DNA from: Trichosphaerium sp. ATCC 40318
Lineage: Eukaryota > Protista > Tubulinea
Direction: 5' to 3'
Assembly: GCA_038496445.1 (NCBI GenBank)
Contig: JALMLS010000446.1
Span: forward strand, 1-64,000
Length of the DNA: 64,000 nucleotides
Made by a program: the position numbers and the translations under genes. The number at the start of each line of letters is the position of its first letter. Position 1 is the stretch's first letter. Below are positions 10,123 to 31,714 of this stretch, piece by piece. The notes under the pieces are model-generated. The model did no database searches. It was not told the origin of the DNA and saw only the letters and a program-made list of their open reading frames with translations.

Positions 10123-12717
10123 ATGTGGCAAAGGGTTAGCCTAGTGACGCGTAGAATCACATCTAAGAATTCTACGCGTGCCTCAGACAGGCGTTCCCGC
10201 TTTTACTGTCAAAATGCCAAGGGTGTCGATTCTAACTCGAGAACTCCATTTGATCAACTTCTAAAGCGCCGATTCTTCTTTGTTCCGTCATTTGAAGTAT
10301 ATAAAGGTAAATAATTAACAACTAACGTAAAACAGCAGCTGACGCAATAAATCGCTTTTATAATTGCTTTCTAACTTGTTTAAGGCATTACGGGAGGTTT
10401 GTACGATTATGGTCCCAACGGCTCTTCATTACTTCACAACATACTCCAGGAGTGGCGTAAAACATTCATTGTACGTGACAACATGCTTGAAGTATCTCCA
10501 AGTATTGTTACACCACATGATGTACTAAAGTGCGTTTTACGCGTTGAAAATACCAACGCTAACACTCAATAGAAACTCTGGGCACGTTGAAAAATTTTCT
10601 GATTTTATGGTTTCAGATGAAGTCACAAAAGAGTGCTATCGCGTCGATCATCTCATAGAAGAACATATAGAGACACAACTTCAAAAATTAGACCCAAAGA
10701 AGTGAGTACAAGGCAAATCTCGACAAAAATTTTAAGAGAATTAAACACAATTCATTCTGACTTTCCACCAAGAGATAACTACAATGAGGACCACGCATCG
10801 CTAACAACTGACATTAATAGTATACCTGATATTGTTAATGCACAGGTACTATAATTTTGAAAGCAGAAATTTATGAAACAACTGCTTTATTAAGTTTTTT
10901 AGGGATTCGATGAACTTCTCAAAAAATACGCTTTAAAATCACCAAATGCAAACCCTCTGTCATCATCATATCCTTTCAACCTTATGTTTGGTGTAAAGAT
11001 TGGTCCAAGAGGAGACTCAAGTGGGTACATGCAACTAATTCAACAAGAAACAATAGTTTTTTTCTGGAGAAATGAACAAAGTTAACACTTTTTTGTGTTG
11101 TAGGTTTCTTCGACCTGAAACTGCTCAAGGTATCTTTGTGAATTTCAAACGACTTCTAGAACAAAATGGTAATAAATTACCACTTGCTTGTGCATGTATT
11201 GGACAAGCATTCAGGAATGAAATATCTCCAAGATCAGGACCACTACGAACACGTGAATTTACATTAGCTGAAATTGAACATTTCGTACTCCCTACAAACA
11301 AGGAGCACCCGAAATTCAATAAGGTACCATCACTGATATAGGCATTGATGTAACTGATGATAGGTTGGACAAGTAAGGATGAATGTACTAGACAGAGAAG
11401 GGCAAAAAGAAAACAAAGGTGCAACCGAAATGACAATTTCTGAAGCTGTTGAAAAGGGTATTGTCAGTAACAGCCTTGTTGGTTACTACCTTGGAAAAAC
11501 ATGCTCATTCCTTCACAATATTGGTGTGAGACCAGAAAAACTTCGTTTTCGACAACACAGAGAAAATGAAATGGCACATTATGCCGAAGACTGTTGGGAT
11601 GCTGAAATAGAAACTTCACATGTACAAAAAAAATCAATATTTAAAGACTCTACTCTTACATGTTTAGGGATGGATAGAAGTTGCTGGTATTGCAGATAGA
11701 AGTGCCTTTGATTTGAATGCACATTCTAAAGGGTCAGGACAAGCACTTGCTGTATACCAAGAACACAGCAAACCTGTATCTTTCTTTACTTTTTTTTTCC
11801 TTTTCGCTTTGGTTTTATGCTGTTGGATCCCTTAACAAAGTAGAAAGTCACTGACAAATTATTCGCCATTCCCAACAAGCCAGCTATTGGTAAAGCTTTT
11901 CGTGGAAACGCTGGTCCTGTTTTCAAGTATTTTGAGCAAATAGAAGAGAACCAAACGATAGAACTAAGGGACACTCTGAAGAAACAAAAAAAGTACAAAA
12001 AAAAACCCAAGAAAACTTATTTTTACCAATTTTATCTCTTTTTTTAGGATGTCTATAAACAAAGACTTGGCTATAGATGAGACAATGGTGTCATTTGAAA
12101 CAAAACGTGTAACTGAGAAAGGGACATACATCACACCCAATGTAATTGAGCCTTCTTTTGGCATAAACCGAATACTTTATGCTGTTCTAGAACACGGCTT
12201 TTGGGTAACTACTTAAAACAAGCTCGCTTTACTTTTGTTGACTCATAGTTTAGGTGAGACCTGAAGATAATCAACGTGCAGTACTCTCATTAGCACCTAG
12301 TGTGTCTCCTGTAAAATGTAGTATCATGCCACTACAGGCAGATGAGAGGCTGGCACCTTTTGTTTCTCAAGTGGTACGAACTCTTTGTTGTTATCATGTT
12401 TTTCTATTGTTAACAGTCACGTGTAGGAGGATATATTAGGTGACCTTGAGTATTCGTTTAAAACTGATAGTTCTGGGGTATCTATTGGAAGAAGATATAG
12501 TCGTACAGATGAGATTGGTATACCTTATGGGATAACAATAGACTTTGACACGTTAGAAGATAAAAAAGTTACAATACGAGAGCGAGACTCAACTCAACAG
12601 ATAAGAGTAGCGTTAAAAGATCTTTCTAATACATTACGTACTCTTGTACGTAATCCAGAAGAATGGAAGAATATGTACACTAAATTAGGCTTCACAGAAG
12701 CCGCAACGGAAAAGTAA
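10123..12717 (+). CDS. GARS: glycyl-tRNA synthetase (class II, eukaryotic alpha2 type), with mitochondrial-presequence-like N-terminus
   Basis: Eleven GT-AG introns traced. Motifs [48 protein letters not shown] and [13 protein letters not shown]. Confidence 0.95.
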
Positions 12718-12811: not shown

Positions 12812-14470
12812 TTATGGTACGGCATTATATTCTGTTCCTAAATTCATACGATAACGTACTAGTATCAAAAGAGTTAGTTGTGCTTTCAAAAAACTGTGAA
12901 AAAAAAAATCCAGTTTTCATTTTGTTGATATTTAGGCTTCAGGAAGGTTACTCACCAAAAAATCCAATAACAACATTAGCTGCAATTATCACCAATACAA
13001 GTGCTGATATAGAAATTGCAATAATAACCTCTCGTGCTTCAATAAAAATAAGAAAGCAAAAAGCAAAACATGGGAGAAAAAAAAAAGTATTATCTCTTTT
13101 CTGCTCTGAAGCATAAGGGTGTGTAGCTTAGATGGTAAAGCGGCTTTCTTTAAACCAGCAGATCGTGGGATCAAACCCCACCTCACCCACTTTTTCCTTG
13201 AAGCATAGACGATGTTACGTACAGAGTACTTGTGTTGTAGGTGTTTGCGCTGCTGGAGCTACTGGTGCTACTGGTTGTGTTGTAGGAGGAACTGGAGTTA
13301 CAGGCGCTACGGGCTCTATAGGGGCGATAGGTGCTTCTGTTGGAGTGATTGGCTGTACGGGTTCAACAGGGGTAACAGGCTGTTGACCTGAAGGTGGTGC
13401 TACTGTCGGTGTGCCAACACAATCCGAGAACAAGTCGTACGTACTAAATGCTAACCGAAAACCGTTTAAAACAAAATGAAATCAGAAGAAGCCGTACTAG
13501 CGTCACCAAAGTTATGTTGTATGAATTCGTTACCTGCAAAGAAATAATTAGTGTCACACTTTTGACCTATTGGATGATTCATCCACAACTAATAAACACT
13601 TGAACTACTGAATAAGCCAAGCGTTTATATACTTACCAGGCCCATGTGCAAATATGAGTTGTCTACCAATACCTCCTTGAGATATTACATGGTCGAATGT
13701 ATCACTTGTGTTAAGTTTTTTTGTGAAATTCATTTCTGTCCAGTTTCCAACAGCATCTGTAAACTGAAGAGCAGTGTACGACTGTAGTTTTCTTTAGTGC
13801 TTTGGTAAGACCAAATAAGGCAGTACCAAAATATCATCTGTTCCACCAAGTTCTGTGTCAAGCTGTGGCTTTCGGTAGCCTGGAGACCAGTAGTCATCAA
13901 CAGTACCATTATTGGTTCCATTAAATAAAGCGATGGAGATATCTGCTTGAATCATAACACCAGTAGTTTTATTAGTAGCATGCCAACCTATACCTAAAAC
14001 ATTGTAAACACATAACACAAGTTCTAAAGTCAAAGTCTTTGGTGTTTTTGATATTTGAATCCAAATCATAACGTTATGATAAAAAACTTTACTTGTGTGT
14101 TTTTTGAACTTTTTCTTAAAACTAACCTATCCAATGAAAGCCAACAACTTTACAATGAAATGTAATAACATCATCTAAGATATGCCAACTGAATGTATAC
14201 GCTAACAAAACGTCAATTCAGAAAACGTTTCGAAAAAAGGTTCAAAAAAGCAAGTCGCTCCACGTGTTTTTTGTCAAAATAGAAATATCAAAATTTTGGA
14301 AAAGTCTATTTAGTACCATCATTTGTTAGCTCACTTCCTGAACCTTTACAATCTAAAGGATTTACGCTATACGCTTCAAGAATACATTTATTATTTTGTT
14401 TTTCATTTTATTGTACTAGCGGCGTACCGTATGTTAAAGCGAAAACAATTAGAAGAACAGTAGCTCTCAT
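12812..14470 (-). CDS. DOMON-domain single-pass membrane protein (signal peptide, DOMON, Pro/Thr stalk, TM)
   Basis: MRATVLLIVFAL signal; GVMIQADISIA, DYWSPGYRKPQLDTELGGTDDI and KKLNTSDTFDH..IFAHG (DOMON); PVTPVEP stalk; TM VIIAISISALVLVIIAANVVIGFF. Confidence 0.75.
13117..13189 (+). tRNA. tRNA-like gene with UUA anticodon (ochre-suppressor-like or tRNA pseudogene), intronic and antisense to the DOMON gene
   Basis: 73-nt cloverleaf GGGTGTG-TA-GCTT-AGATGGTA-AAGC-G-GCTTT-CTTTAAA-CCAGC-AGATC-GTGGG-ATCAAAC-CCCAC-CTCACCC-A with A/B-box-like motifs. The anticodon stem has only 3 of 5 pairs. Confidence 0.8.
13191..13195 (+). terminator. oligo-T Pol III terminator of the tRNA-like gene
   Basis: TTTTT begins 2 nt after the discriminator base. 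Confidence 0.6.
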
Positions 14471-15951: not shown

Positions 15952-18120
15952 TTAGCTGAACATTTCCTCCATTTCTTGCTCTGCTTGGCGTTCTTTCTCT
16001 TGCAAAGCTTGGTATCTTGCCAAAAGAGCAGCTTGTTGCTTTTTATGCTCTTCTTCACGCTGGGCTTTACGTGCAGCGATTCTCTCCTTCATACGTTGAC
16101 GAGCTTGATCTTCAGCTCTTTGTTCAGCCTCATATCTAGCCATTTGTTCCTCTTCTTGTTGAAGTTTCCTGTTAAGCAGAAAGTTAGTTTTTGGTTTTTT
16201 TACTCCATGCAAGGTCACAAAAAAAAAATACGTACTTTTGTTCTGCTTCCATTTTACGTCTAGCAATACGTTCTTTCATGGCGCGGCTAGCACGTTCTTC
16301 TTCTTCTTGTTCGCGTCTGTATTTTTCCATAGCCTCATCTTCGAACTTGTTCTTGTTTTGTTCAGATTCAGCCTTACGACGAGCGATACGTTCGCGCATA
16401 GAAGTAAGAGCTTGTTCTTCTGCTTTTTGTTCTTCTTGGTAACGACGCATTTGTTCTTCTTCTTCTTCAGCCTTTCTACGATCGGCTTCAGCTTTACGAC
16501 GAGCAATACGCTCTTTCATTGCTCTAAGAGCATTTTCTTCCTCTGCTTGTTCACGTTGGTATTTCTCCATAGCTTCAGCTTCGAACTTGTTCTTGTTTTG
16601 TTCAGACTCAGCCTTACGACGAGCAATACGGTCACGCATAGAAGTAAGTGCCTGCTCTTCTGCTTTTTGTTCCTCTTGGTAGCGACGCATTTGTTCCTCT
16701 TCTTCCTCAGCCTTTCTACGATCGGCTTCAGCTTTTCTTCTAGCGATACGTTCTTTCATAGCGCGAAGAGCATTTTCTTCCTCTGCTTGTTCGCGTTGGT
16801 ATTTCTCCATAGCCTCAGCTTCGAACTTATTCTTGTTTTGTTCAGATTCAGCTTTACGACGAGCGATACGGTCACGCATAGAAGTAAGAGCTTGTTCTTC
16901 TGCTTTTTGTTCTTCTTGGTAACGACGCATTTGTTCTTCTTCTTCTTCAGCCTTTCTACGATCGGCTTCAGCTTTACGACGAGCAATACGCTCTTTCATG
17001 GCTCTAAGAGCGTTTTCTTCCTCTGCTTGTTCACGTTGGTATTTCTCCATAGCCTCAGCCTGTAAAATGTCAGTTAGTAAGTGTAATCAAAATAAAAAAG
17101 TTCACATACCTCAAACTTGTTCTTGTTTTGTTCGGACTCAGCTTTACGACGAGCAATACGGTCACGCATAGAAGTAAGAGCTTGTTCTTCTGCTCTTTGT
17201 TCTTCTTGGTAACGACGCATTTGTTCTTGTTCTTCCTCAGCCTTTCTACTTTCAGCTTCAGCTTTACGACGAGCAATACGCTCTTTCATGGCACGAGATG
17301 CGTTGTTTTCTTGTTCCTGTTCGCGTTGGTATTTCTCCATAGCTTCAGCCTCGAACTTGTTCTTGTTTTGTTCAGATTCAGCTTTACGACGAGCAATACG
17401 GTCACGCATAGAAGTAAGAGCTTGTTCTTCTGCTCTTTGTTCTTCTTGGTAACGACGCATTTGTTCTTCTTCTGCGTCAGCCTTTCTACTTTCGGCTTCA
17501 GCTTTACGACGAGCAATACGCTCTTTCATGGCACGAGATGCATTGTTTTCTTGTTCCTGTTCGCGCTGGTAGGCTTCCATTTGTTCTCGCTATAAAATGC
17601 AATCAGAGAAAACTGCAAGAGTAACTGACGAGATGCAAGGCGTGTTTTTTATGGATTTCGGTTTTGTTTTCTGTCGTACCTCACGTTGAGCTTTACGAGC
17701 CTCAGAATCAGCTTTACGACGCTCAATACGCTCGCGCATACGACGAGCAGCGGCTTCCTCCTCTTCTTGCTCTCTTTGGTACTTTGCCATGGCTTCAGCC
17801 TATTCAAGGTGTCATAAAAATGCAATAGAACGAAAAAGAAAAAAAAATGCGTTAAAACCAACCTCGAACTTGTTTTTGTTTTGCTCAGATTGAGCTTTAC
17901 GGCGGGCAATGCTTTCGCGTATTCTGGCTGCGGCTGCATCTTCTTTGGCCAGTTCTTCTTGGTAAATGGCCATTTTTTGACGCTCTTCTTCTTCTTTACG
18001 CTTTTTGGCTTCGAAACGGGCCTTTGCTTTGGATCTTTTTAAAGCAATCCTACGTTTCATTGCAGCCTCCTCCTCTTGGAGCATACGTTCCATATCCTGA
18101 AGTGACATTCCATTGTCCAT
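15952..18120 (-). CDS. E/R/K-rich tandem-repeat alpha-helical (coiled-coil/single-alpha-helix) protein
   Basis: Five exons with introns at 17800-17862, ~17590-17679, 17060-17109 and ~16169-16235 join the repeat ORFs in frame. Confidence 0.85.
16240..17790 (-). repeat. coding tandem repeat, 240-bp (80-aa) unit made of two ~40-aa subunits
   Basis: MEKYQREQ..MKERIARRKAE..MRRYQEEQ..MRDRIARRKAESEQNKNKFEAEA repeated about 5-6 times with high nucleotide identity. Confidence 0.95.
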
Positions 18121-22920: not shown

Positions 22921-24123
22921 CTAGCATGGTGTATTATTGGCTTCAGTAACTGACACGGCAAGATCAGTATCGGGTCCAGTCCAAGTACATGCAAGAATAA
23001 CACGTTCTGTACCAAGTGGCCATGGGTTGCCGAGTGTAATCTACGAAAAGATAAGTGTGAGCACAGCCGAATAAAACAATCAATTTGCAAAACAATTGCG
23101 TACCAGTTTCGTGTTAGGACCAGCGTCAGAAACAGACCCTACAGAAGACCAACAAGACTGAATACTTACACCTGCAGGTGAGTTTTGTTTCACTTTTACA
23201 CTTGTTATCATAGCACCAGAAGAAGGAGAGGTGAGATGTATGTATGCGTTCATATCGTTATGCCAAGCTATACACGTATTAGTACAAATCAAACTCCATA
23301 AATCCAACGTACCATTAATTCTTGTTTGTGATACAACAGGGCAAAATGAAGGCGGTTGAGGTGAAGGAGTAGCAGTTACAGGTGGAGGAGGAGCGCTCGT
23401 AGGTGGTGGAGGAGCGCTCGTAGGTGGTGGAGGGGAACTCATAGGTGGTGGAGGTGGAGAGGCCGTTGGAGGCGGAGGTGGAGGTGGTGGCGGCTGAGAA
23501 CCTCCTGTGTATGTAGCAACTGCTGGACCAGTAAAAAAGAATGGAGCATTAGGTTCATAGACTAATCTGTATTGGCTTGCATCAAGAGGAAGGTTTCCAG
23601 GAATAGTAACTACAGGTGTCCAGCTGATAGCTCCAGTATTTCCGTTTGTGATAACGACATCAGCGCATTGTACATAGTATTCGACTTGAGTGACGAGTTG
23701 AAGGGCATACCATTCCCATCTAAGAACAGCAGTACCACTAGGTACCCAAGAAGGGATAGTTACACTTGCTCCGCTTTTTTGGTGACAATCACGAATTTGA
23801 GCAATCTTCGCCCACGTGGCTTCGTTATCGAAAGAGAGGTAAAAGAAACAATCTCCTGGGTGAGCAGCTGTGAATGCCCAATTCATTTGGTATGTTTGGC
23901 CGGCTGAATAAGTTTCTGTTGCGCCCACAACAGGTTGATTACGGCATACATGTGCTGATGTGTATTGTCCTTGGTTCAAGTTTACTGGTTCGTTCTGCGT
24001 ATGTTGTGGTCTTCCGTTTTGTACGTCACGTGATATTGGGTTTGTAAGACGTCCATGTCCGTAAACACAGCAAAGTAGAGAACAAAGAATAGCAACGAGA
24101 AATAAAGACGTGATAGAGGTCAT
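22921..24123 (-). CDS. secreted lytic polysaccharide monooxygenase (His-brace) + Pro-rich linker + putative carbohydrate-binding module
   Basis: Signal peptide ends at VYG|HGRL (His1); AHPG second His; LRWEWY and YYVQCADV; poly-Pro linker; last exon ITLGNPWPLG...NNTPC*. Confidence 0.8.
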
Positions 24124-30508: not shown

Positions 30509-31714
30509 ATGAGTGGATACGACGAGCCTGATATTAGAGTCACAGTAAACCTTAACGATGCTGCAGTCGATTCGACAAAAAGAGATAACGTTCGACGCGA
30601 AAACTATGGAAGAGCGCCCAAAAACCATCGGCGGATAGACTCAGCAACAAACTTGAACAAGCGAAAAAAACGATTTAACTTGCAAAATTCCTCCAACGAC
30701 GACGAAAATGAGCTAGATTACTCCCCACCGCGTAAGAAGTCACGTATATTAACAGATGAAGATAAAGAGAGCGAAGTACTTTTCTCCACACAACAACTCA
30801 AACTACGCCAACAACGTTTTGGCAAGACACTACCAAGAGGGATAGATTCAGCATTAGAACCAAAGAAGAACAAAGCCAAATCCAAACGCTTCAAGCGCAC
30901 AGGCGCTAAACTAAGCGACAGCACAAGTTCAATAGAAGATGAAGAGGAGTTAAAAAGACGACGAGCAAGAGCGAGACGATTTGAAAGCAATGGCAGCCCA
31001 GGAGCACCACGAAGAAAAACTCAAACAAAAACGAACACAAACTTGTCCACACAACAACAGAACGACGTTAGCAACGGCACAAGACTTACACGACATACAA
31101 GAACGCGAGAAGGTAACCATACACCAACAGACTACGCCAACAACAACGAAACGAACTCTGAGGAAGTGACAGACCTTACAAAGATTGATGGAGATGAAGG
31201 CACCGATCCTGTACTTTCCCCAACGGATTTTTTAAAGTCGGTTATACCGGAGGCAATTGAAGCCCGAGACCAGAAAATAGCCTCTAGAGGATCTATACAG
31301 AGCGAGGAACAAGATAGCATAAGTAATGAAGCATCAGAAGCCAAAGAAAGAGCGGTGATAAGCATTGACGATTTGGAATCAAAACAAACGTATGAGGAAG
31401 CTCAGATGGAGATTGAGGCACTAAAACGAGAAGTAGCCAAGAAAGATAAAAGAATAGAATCACAGAAAGGACAACTTGTTACTGTCCGTAAGGACTTGTT
31501 TGAACAGAGGAAAGCTAATGAGACTCTTAAAAGTGATGTAACGAACTGGCAGAACCAGTGTTTTCAACATGTCGGAAAAATGAAGCATTTGGAGGATAGG
31601 ATTACTGAACTGTCCAAAAAGGATGAGAAGAATCAACAGTTAATTAGAGTATTGCGTAACATCGAATTGGATTACCACAACCTAAAGAAAAAGGTCGCAA
31701 ACCTAGTACAGTAG
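30509..31714 (+). CDS. intronless disordered protein with C-terminal coiled coil and basic NLS-like tracts
   Basis: 401-aa ORF containing RQQRFG and RRARARRF motifs and a heptad-rich C-terminus. Confidence 0.7.
   Translation: MSGYDEPDIRVTVNLNDAAVDSTKRDNVRRENYGRAPKNHRRIDSATNLNKRKKRFNLQNSSNDDENELDYSPPRKKSRILTDEDKESEVLFSTQQLKLRQQRFGKTLPRGIDSALEPKKNKAKSKRFKRTGAKLSDSTSSIEDEEELKRRRARARRFESNGSPGAPRRKTQTKTNTNLSTQQQNDVSNGTRLTRHTRTREGNHTPTDYANNNETNSEEVTDLTKIDGDEGTDPVLSPTDFLKSVIPEAIEARDQKIASRGSIQSEEQDSISNEASEAKERAVISIDDLESKQTYEEAQMEIEALKREVAKKDKRIESQKGQLVTVRKDLFEQRKANETLKSDVTNWQNQCFQHVGKMKHLEDRITELSKKDEKNQQLIRVLRNIELDYHNLKKKVANLVQ

Follow-up and report, generated by a model that had tools for sequence, protein, structure and literature searches.

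A tRNA-type gene with an ochre anticodon, and its opal-anticodon twin, in the genome of Trichosphaerium sp. ATCC 40318

We describe a 73-nt tRNA-type gene carrying the ochre anticodon UUA at positions 13117–13189 of the forward strand of a 64,000-nt stretch of DNA (hereafter the window) from Trichosphaerium sp. ATCC 40318 (assembly GCA_038496445.1, contig JALMLS010000446.1, positions 1 to 64,000), where it lies antisense in a 186-nt intron of a protein-coding host gene. The explanation we prefer, and to which we would give about an even chance of being right, is that the locus is an anticodon-shifted orphan tRNA, that is, a genuine gene of the RNA polymerase III (Pol III) type that is not mobile and that would be tolerated as a poor decoder. 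Part of the evidence for this explanation comes from a comparison with the sole close relative of the gene in the assembly, an opal-anticodon twin on contig C34, in which the stems of the tRNA body are unchanged and the anticodon arm is not.

Results

A tRNA-type gene complementary to the UAA stop codon

The only tRNA reported by ARAGORN in the 64-kb window is a tRNA-Stop with anticodon tta at 13117–13190 (+), and the Rfam tRNA family RF00005 matches 13117–13189 over the full model (positions 1–71 of 71) scoring 55.4 bits where 29 is the cut-off (E 3e-9 for the window), no Rfam family besides RF00005 matching this interval. A covariance model that we built from the gene and its twin scores it at 97.7 bits. 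The full cloverleaf with a T5 terminator and the ochre anticodon in the context CT-TTA-AA, both of which the initial annotation had proposed, are thus present where they were placed, as judged from ARAGORN and the sequence for each and from the Rfam alignment for the cloverleaf. The parts of the gene are as follows.

13117–13189, + strand: tRNA gene of 73 nt, anticodon UUA (ochre), with A54 and discriminator A73 (ARAGORN, Rfam RF00005, own covariance model)
13150–13152, + strand: anticodon TTA, in the loop C32 U33 U34 U35 A36 A37 A38 (sequence; ARAGORN position 34)
13191–13195, + strand: run of five T resembling a Pol III terminator, one base past the discriminator (sequence)

The anticodon is complementary to UAA and occupies a loop of the canonical 7 nt, and the bases that are universal in tRNAs are all found in the body (U8, A14, G18 and G19, A21, U33 and a purine at 37), as are those of the T arm (G53, U55 and C56, A58, C61) except that T54 is replaced by A54. 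This A54 had been counted as an irregularity; the base is indeed there, but it is no anomaly in this genome, since the multi-copy tRNA-Phe(GAA), tRNA-Ala and tRNA-Lys(CUU) genes have it as well. The whole GATCAA T loop (A54, A57) is common to the window gene and the multi-copy tRNA-Phe, and because of this sharing its B box should be usable; by sequence, both its A and B boxes resemble those of working genes in the same genome. The T5 run likewise has its counterpart in the ordinary tRNA genes, which are followed by at least four T within about 10 nt downstream.

The structure is less regular in the anticodon arm. The Infernal alignment contains exactly three non-standard pairs, namely 6:67 (U.U), 30:40 (U.C) and 31:39 (U.C), the last two being the broken pairs that had been noted before, so that the usual five-pair anticodon stem is reduced to 3 bp; the minimum-free-energy fold likewise brings the stem down to three pairs. 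Folding z-scores near zero and a minimum-free-energy fold of the C34 twin that is no cloverleaf are uninformative, as is usual for unmodified tRNA sequences. The Rfam score of 55 bits compares with 66–76 bits for the ordinary tRNAs of the genome. Taken together, these alignments identify the locus as a genuine tRNA-type gene with an ochre anticodon and a sound structure.

A single twin with an opal anticodon, formed with the flanking exon

The assembly (70 Mb in 642 contigs, about 38% G+C) was searched for further copies in three independent ways, that is, by a BLAST-type search with the 73-mer, by a 25-base pattern of the T arm and acceptor with at most three mismatches, and with the covariance model of the pair, and each returned exactly one relative of the window gene, at C34:319291–319363 (+). 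With the covariance model the pair scores 98.1 and 97.7 bits and the next match in the genome 59.1 bits. The twin is 77% identical to the window tRNA (56/73), has the same length of 73 nt, with five nucleotides in the variable loop, a T loop of the normal sequence TTCGAAC and a mismatch at A30.C40, and is assigned by ARAGORN the anticodon tca, the complement of the opal codon; T-run terminators stand behind both genes. A reading of the twin as tRNA-Sec was rejected, as tRNAs of that class measure about 87–90 nt and are marked by a long variable arm and an extended helix of acceptor plus T stem, in contrast to the length and the short variable loop of the twin. The initial annotation had named a closest paralogue with an ordinary anticodon and an intact stem as the mark of random decay, and the paralogue we find carries UCA instead. 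It had also proposed to inspect each copy for TTA and for direct repeats of its own; the sole other copy reads TCA, and the 9-bp repeat was not found there.

Homology between the two loci is not confined to the tRNA. It extends over window 12939–13189 and C34:319132–319363 (blastn, 69.8% identity over 252 columns, E 1e-23), stops at the 3' end of the tRNA, and on the 5' side covers about 180 bp and reaches into an exon of the host gene that encodes a transmembrane (TM) helix.

12939–13189, + strand: segment duplicated on C34; it takes in the TM exon with the 5' splice site of the next intron, some 80 nt of intron, and the tRNA

When the upstream 187 nt were searched alone, the same two places in the genome were recovered and no others. 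The shared 5' flank, with its intron, TM exon and splice site, therefore points to a segmental duplication in which the tRNA was already part of the copied locus, and we infer that both loci derive from such an event, about 250 bp in size. By this alignment, what was duplicated is this fragment only and not the whole host gene; around the twin, pieces of a MORN_2-like open reading frame (ORF) occur in three frames beside the TM-exon copy.

The scaffold is conserved and the anticodon arm is not

The 17 differences between the twins are distributed very unevenly. Three lie in the D loop (16, 17, 20), one at position 9, two in the variable loop (46, 47), two in the T loop (54, 57), and the remaining nine in the anticodon arm (29–32, 35, 37–39 and 41). 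The acceptor, D and T stems, 32 bases in all, contain none of the 17 (hypergeometric P 8.6e-6), and the nine in the 17-nt anticodon arm represent an excess (P 0.002). For comparison, identity at the same loci is 78% in the exon and about 60% in the intron flank, where the alignment has 13 gap columns, and falls to 49% over the 33 nt downstream. As read from these alignments, the tRNA scaffold was held constant while unconstrained DNA diverged by about 40%, which implies that at least the RNA shape was kept by selection, and change in the anticodon arm was no slower than in the adjoining intron. Some of the differences (9, 16, 17, 54, 57) lie within the A and B promoter boxes, and the stems are conserved on their 3' strands as well, which places the constraint on the RNA structure and not on the internal promoter only.

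A five-gene family with unrelated anticodons

A search with the acceptor pattern GGGTGTGT..CTCACC finds four genes in the genome and none with the reversed-pattern control. Two of the four are the twins, and with a fifth member recognized by its sequence the other family genes are these.

C107:139768–139840, − strand: family member with anticodon ACU and a pyrimidine at 37 (acceptor pattern)
C166:67695–67767, − strand: family member with anticodon GAC (acceptor pattern)
C2:485410–485482, − strand: fifth family member with anticodon GCA, U73 and acceptor GGGTGTT (sequence)

The family acceptor stem is GGGUGUG/CUCACCY, including the U6.U67 mismatch, all five genes are single-copy, and their anticodons (GCA, GAC, ACU, UCA and UUA) are unrelated. 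The flanks of the C107 and C166 genes showed no relation to those of the window gene. In the alignment of the five genes 89.5% of cells are paired compared with 75.6% after shuffling, eight pairs are changed on both sides, and the T stem is fully paired (100%); the pairs 6:67 and 31:39 are each unpaired in four of the five genes. The weakness at 31:39 is shared by all three of the C2, C107 and C166 genes (3/3), in which the D and T stems carry compensatory changes. From this pattern we conclude that these genes evolve as folded tRNAs in which a short anticodon stem is habitual and whose anticodons are unrelated in meaning. Substitutions placed blindly with respect to structure, which a neutral tRNA pseudogene would accumulate, are not what the pair and the family show, given the stem bases left without a difference and these compensatory changes.

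With the anticodon arm set aside, identity between the twins is 86% and no other sampled tRNA exceeds 71%, within a partial catalogue of 54 to 60 distinct genes, depending on the ends assigned by ARAGORN. The anticodon arm of the window gene has no near relative, with at least 7 differences in 17 positions to every sampled arm, and an origin of its loop from tRNA-Lys(UUU), as proposed earlier, is possible. The arm of the twin is closest to that of the GCA gene (5/17 differences), and their 7-nt loops differ at position 34 only, which suggests a path from GCA through UCA to UUA for the anticodon.

Several other features of the tRNA set may be recorded here. A second family, with the acceptor GTTCCCT../..AGGGTTC, has the anticodons CAU, UAA and CUC; in three members the acceptor pairs 2 and 3 are both U.U, and the 5' strand of the acceptor recurs in a clean tRNA-Ile(UAU) (the loci of the family and of this tRNA are C1:816409–816481, C1:508647–508719, C86:118229–118302 and C31:255867–255940). 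Mismatched tRNA families of this sort appear to be characteristic of this genome. A CTTTTTGG(C)-like box occurs about 40–50 nt upstream of many tRNA genes (e.g., L009, L010, L015, L025, L029 and L032), and in many ordinary tRNA genes CAA stands right ahead of the first base. By its position the CTTTTTGG-like box may be an external Pol III promoter element; it was not found at about −45 of the UUA and UCA genes, a result that is not decisive.

The genetic code appears standard

Four full-length HSP70 genes, with about 600 matched positions each, contain no in-frame stop, and in all four TAA follows directly on the conserved ..EEVE terminus. The eRF1 gene has the canonical motifs TASNIKS, YLCDNKF and GGQ. 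This sample of the code is small and biased to highly expressed genes; the stops that lie within weaker exon matches are a mixture of TAA, TAG and TGA, as expected of introns that are read through. TAA is thus an ordinary stop, in agreement with the initial annotation, and no codon reassignment is therefore implied by the ochre anticodon. A change of the code was rejected on the basis of the HSP70 genes, the eRF1 motifs and a separate, true tRNA-Sec gene at C5:742868–742954 (−) (87 nt, Rfam RF01852, 61.7 bits), from which it follows that the organism probably makes selenoproteins.

A role for the UCA gene as a UGA-reading tRNA imported by mitochondria is unlikely, as AT-rich and probably organellar contigs carry tRNA-Trp(CCA). 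These AT-rich tRNA pairs, which include tRNA-Trp(CCA), were seen at C291:19757–19907 and in mirrored form at 31258–31408 of the same contig (about 44 kb), and also on C318 and C369; the layout of C291 suggests an inverted repeat in what is probably an organelle genome.

Direct repeats flank the window gene

The repeats that the initial annotation had described as bracketing the tRNA are both in place.

13107–13115, + strand: 9-bp direct repeat TGAAGCATA, upstream copy (sequence; the twin matches 3 of 9 bases)
13199–13207, + strand: 9-bp direct repeat TGAAGCATA, downstream copy (sequence; the twin matches 5 of 9 bases)

The two copies lie 1 and 9 nt from the ends of the gene. Among random 73-nt segments of the window, flanking repeats of at least 9 bp occur at 0.3% (25-nt flanks) to 1.6% (40-nt flanks), and among 41 tRNA loci of the genome three have such repeats compared with about 0.6 expected, one of the three being of low complexity. 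The other loci with 9-bp repeats within 40 nt on each side are tRNA-Thr(UGU) L030, with TATTTGCTT, and tRNA-Asn(GUU) L027, with the low-complexity TTTTTTCTG. The alignment of the two loci showed no TGAAGCATA repeat at the C34 twin, and no body or tail unrelated to tRNA was found 3' of the window tRNA, where the T5 run stands right behind the discriminator. By sequence, the repeat is genuine and somewhat improbable as a chance event, and it does not make the locus a member of a mobile family.

A use of the RNA as a retroelement primer was also considered and dropped, since no exact primer-binding site (tRNA 3' end plus CCA) was found, and sites with at most two mismatches numbered 15 compared with 10 for the reversed control.

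Discussion

Weighing the explanations

The course of events that we favor would begin with a locus in which a tRNA stood beside the TM-helix exon and which was copied as a segment of about 250 bp, giving the UUA gene here and the UCA gene on C34. Since that duplication the acceptor, D and T stems would have remained unchanged, with the loops and the anticodon arm changing at the pace of the intron. The genes would be transcribed from their internal A and B boxes, with transcription stopping (at the T5 run, in the window copy), and the products processed to tRNA-shaped RNAs, so that selection would read the scaffold and not the codon-reading arm; the ochre anticodon would then be a by-product of a drifting arm, likely by the Cys-like path already outlined. 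The body of the tRNA appears to fit the usual identity set of no synthetase, and because of this, together with the 3-bp anticodon stem, an ochre tRNA of this kind would be tolerated and be at most a very weak suppressor.

Several observations weigh against this account. Stop anticodons in both twins are unexpected under pure drift (3/64 for each, unless the state is ancestral), and neutral change is gauged from a short, AT-rich stretch of aligned intron (about 80 nt, with the gap columns mentioned above). A closer relative with a sense anticodon could have been missed in the incomplete tRNA sample. The perfect 9-bp repeat is left unexplained, and may reflect chance at the background frequency given above or an old insertion with repeats that persist in a single lineage. 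Lastly, relative to the four other family members the window copy has the derived states A9, A46, A54 and A57 and is the more altered twin, so that with its two broken anticodon-stem pairs its function may have been lost recently.

This last point leads to the possibility that the window copy, or both copies, are decaying pseudogenes in which the ochre anticodon and the broken stem are random damage, which we consider unlikely but worth serious attention. The two broken pairs, the derived changes to A or T, the Rfam score below the range of ordinary tRNAs, and the frequency with which stop-anticodon tRNA genes are predicted in genomes that use the standard code, maize among them, all agree with it. 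It is harder to reconcile with 32 stem bases free of change next to an intron diverged by about 40% and an exon diverged by 22%, with 3' stem strands spared in a manner unlike random decay, with an intact T5 terminator, and with an A54 that is normal in this genome. That the twins are working weak suppressors, charged and reading UAA and UGA inefficiently in programmed or background readthrough, seems to us rather improbable. Both genes keep U33, U34 and A36 even though four of the seven loop positions differ, and the window loop CU-UUA-AA contains A36-A37-A38, the context recognized by tRNA isopentenyl transferases and found in efficient yeast ochre suppressors. The scaffold appears to be under selection and T-run terminators follow both genes, as would suit working suppressors. 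In addition, short anticodon stems can promote the reading of stop codons in some eukaryotes (PMC13092985). Nevertheless, the four HSP70 genes lack in-frame stops and eRF1 is canonical, the case described there has 4 bp, a stronger stem than the 3 bp with two U.C mismatches seen here, and no synthetase identity set matches; the pyrimidine 37 and the ACU anticodon of other family members argue against selection of the family's anticodon arm for decoding, and the divergence of the arm is at least equal to that of the intron. A stronger form of the same idea, in which the duplicated UUA and UCA tRNAs with their weak stems would be kept by selection as standing low-efficiency suppressors for regulated readthrough or as an "ambiguous intermediate" on the way to stop-codon reassignment, strikes us as more doubtful still.

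The initial annotation had suggested, as one of two readings, a mobilized, minimal SINE-like (short interspersed element-like) Pol III unit, in which a retroposed tRNA copy entered the intron and left a 9-bp target-site duplication. The perfect repeat close to both gene ends, rarely matched in the background, and the slight surplus of such repeats at tRNA loci speak for it, yet there are two copies only in 70 Mb, no body or tail unrelated to tRNA is present, the sampled tRNAs include no closer source gene, and the twin has the same 5' flank and exon without the repeat. The DNA shared by the two loci extends 5' of the tRNA and takes in an exon of the host gene, the opposite of what a SINE with a tRNA head and a 3' body and tail would leave, and we regard this explanation as very unlikely. 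An error of sequencing or assembly behind the TTA anticodon or the stem mismatches is barely credible, as nothing was found in its favor, the anticodon arm differs from that of the twin at 9 of 17 positions rather than at one base, and the surrounding exons read through cleanly.

Comparison with known systems

An anticodon-shifted orphan has precedents. Nuclear tRNA anticodon shifts are documented in eukaryotes, and stop anticodons arise in 14 of 414 possible single-base shifts (Rogers and Griffiths-Jones, 2014; PMC3923123). The window pair resembles the shifts described there in that a gene was duplicated, its body kept and its anticodon class changed. It differs in that both duplicates have stop anticodons, that the arm has diverged at 9 of 17 positions, and that the change is inferred from paralogues within one genome and not from syntenic orthologues. 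Stop anticodons in both duplicates, along with internal evidence of scaffold conservation, are unusual with respect to the known shifts. In genomes with the standard code, such as maize, tRNA finders also report predicted "suppressor" tRNA genes with the anticodons UUA, UCA and CUA (bioRxiv 10.1101/2023.03.20.533458), and these share with the window gene a stop-complementary cloverleaf, a standard code and a putative function. The maize genes, however, give good alignments to the canonical tRNAs of one named amino acid or another, whereas the bodies of the window pair reach no more than 71% identity to other sampled tRNAs, and it is the window pair that shows conservation of the scaffold since an old duplication.

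Shortened anticodon stems are also known from a tRNA-Trp(CCA) with a 4-bp stem that reads UGA in Blastocrithidia and some ciliates, as summarized in PMC13092985 and PMC12153298, and the frequent loss of pair 31:39 in the window family (4/5) is similar to this. The organisms concerned have reassigned stops, an altered eRF1 and a sense anticodon, in contrast to the standard code and eRF1 motifs, the stop-complementary anticodon and the three remaining pairs of the window copy. Compared with tRNA-derived SINEs, the window locus has in common a tRNA-like Pol III unit, a short direct repeat and an intronic position; such SINEs number hundreds of copies with a body or tail, whereas here there are two copies, no body or tail, and homology that runs upstream into a host exon.

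A bacterial or viral origin was rejected, since pattern scans of metagenome, viral and prokaryote sequences gave only tRNA-Lys(CUU) of the alphaproteobacterial type (Roseibium, Hoeflea, Afifella and others), at a chance level of resemblance. The acceptor of these tRNAs is identical, including U6.U67, and they are about 75% identical to the window tRNA, but this match is largely by construction because the search pattern fixed the acceptor and T-arm bases. Their anticodon stem is of the type GCUGA/UCAGC, and unlike them the window gene resides in an intron of a eukaryote and has its twin as its nearest relative.

Implications

Stop-anticodon tRNA genes are usually dismissed as noise in genomes with the standard code, and here the duplicate pair supplies an internal clock against which such a gene can be judged. 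If the RNAs are made and charged, the pair would be a natural test case for the tolerance of ochre and opal suppressors and for the start of stop-codon reassignment. If they are not charged, they would represent tRNA-shaped RNAs kept for a role other than decoding, with the same acceptor stem and a free anticodon arm. In either case annotators should be cautious, and a change of code should not be deduced from the tRNA set of this genome.

The host gene and its neighbors

The host gene was read exon by exon, with the intron bounds taken from our own reading of GT..AG boundaries, and the parts nearest the tRNA are as follows.

12948–13036, − strand: last coding exon, with the TM helix and then the stop TAA at 12948–12950 (translation; 78% identical to the C34 segment)
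13037–13222, − strand: host intron of 186 nt, GT..AG, phase 1, with the tRNA antisense inside (flanking exon translations join in frame)
13223–13433, − strand: Pro/Thr-rich stalk exon (translation)
13797–13994, − strand: DOMON-like exon (Pfam PF03351, 21 bits, E 4e-4, gathering score 32.7)

The intron and the antisense orientation of the tRNA are as the initial annotation gave them. The name DOMON gene is less secure, as it depends on a single exon that scores 21 bits, below the gathering score. The other introns of the gene measure about 46 to 225 nt by the same reading, so that 186 nt is not unusual for this gene, contrary to the earlier remark that removal of the insert would bring the intron nearer the usual size.

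Elsewhere in the window, a 347-aa ORF at 23083–24123 (−) contains an AA9/LPMO-like domain (PF03443, E 3e-11), and a 288-aa ORF at 16184–17050 (−) consists of tandem repeats of about 80 aa that are rich in E, K and R and coiled-coil-like, the opposite strand also being open. Exons of a class II aminoacyl-tRNA synthetase at 10400–12450 (+) are situated just upstream of the host gene; one of them matches the class II core domain (PF00587, 29.4 bits, E 1e-6), and from its appearance this synthetase may be GlyRS-like.

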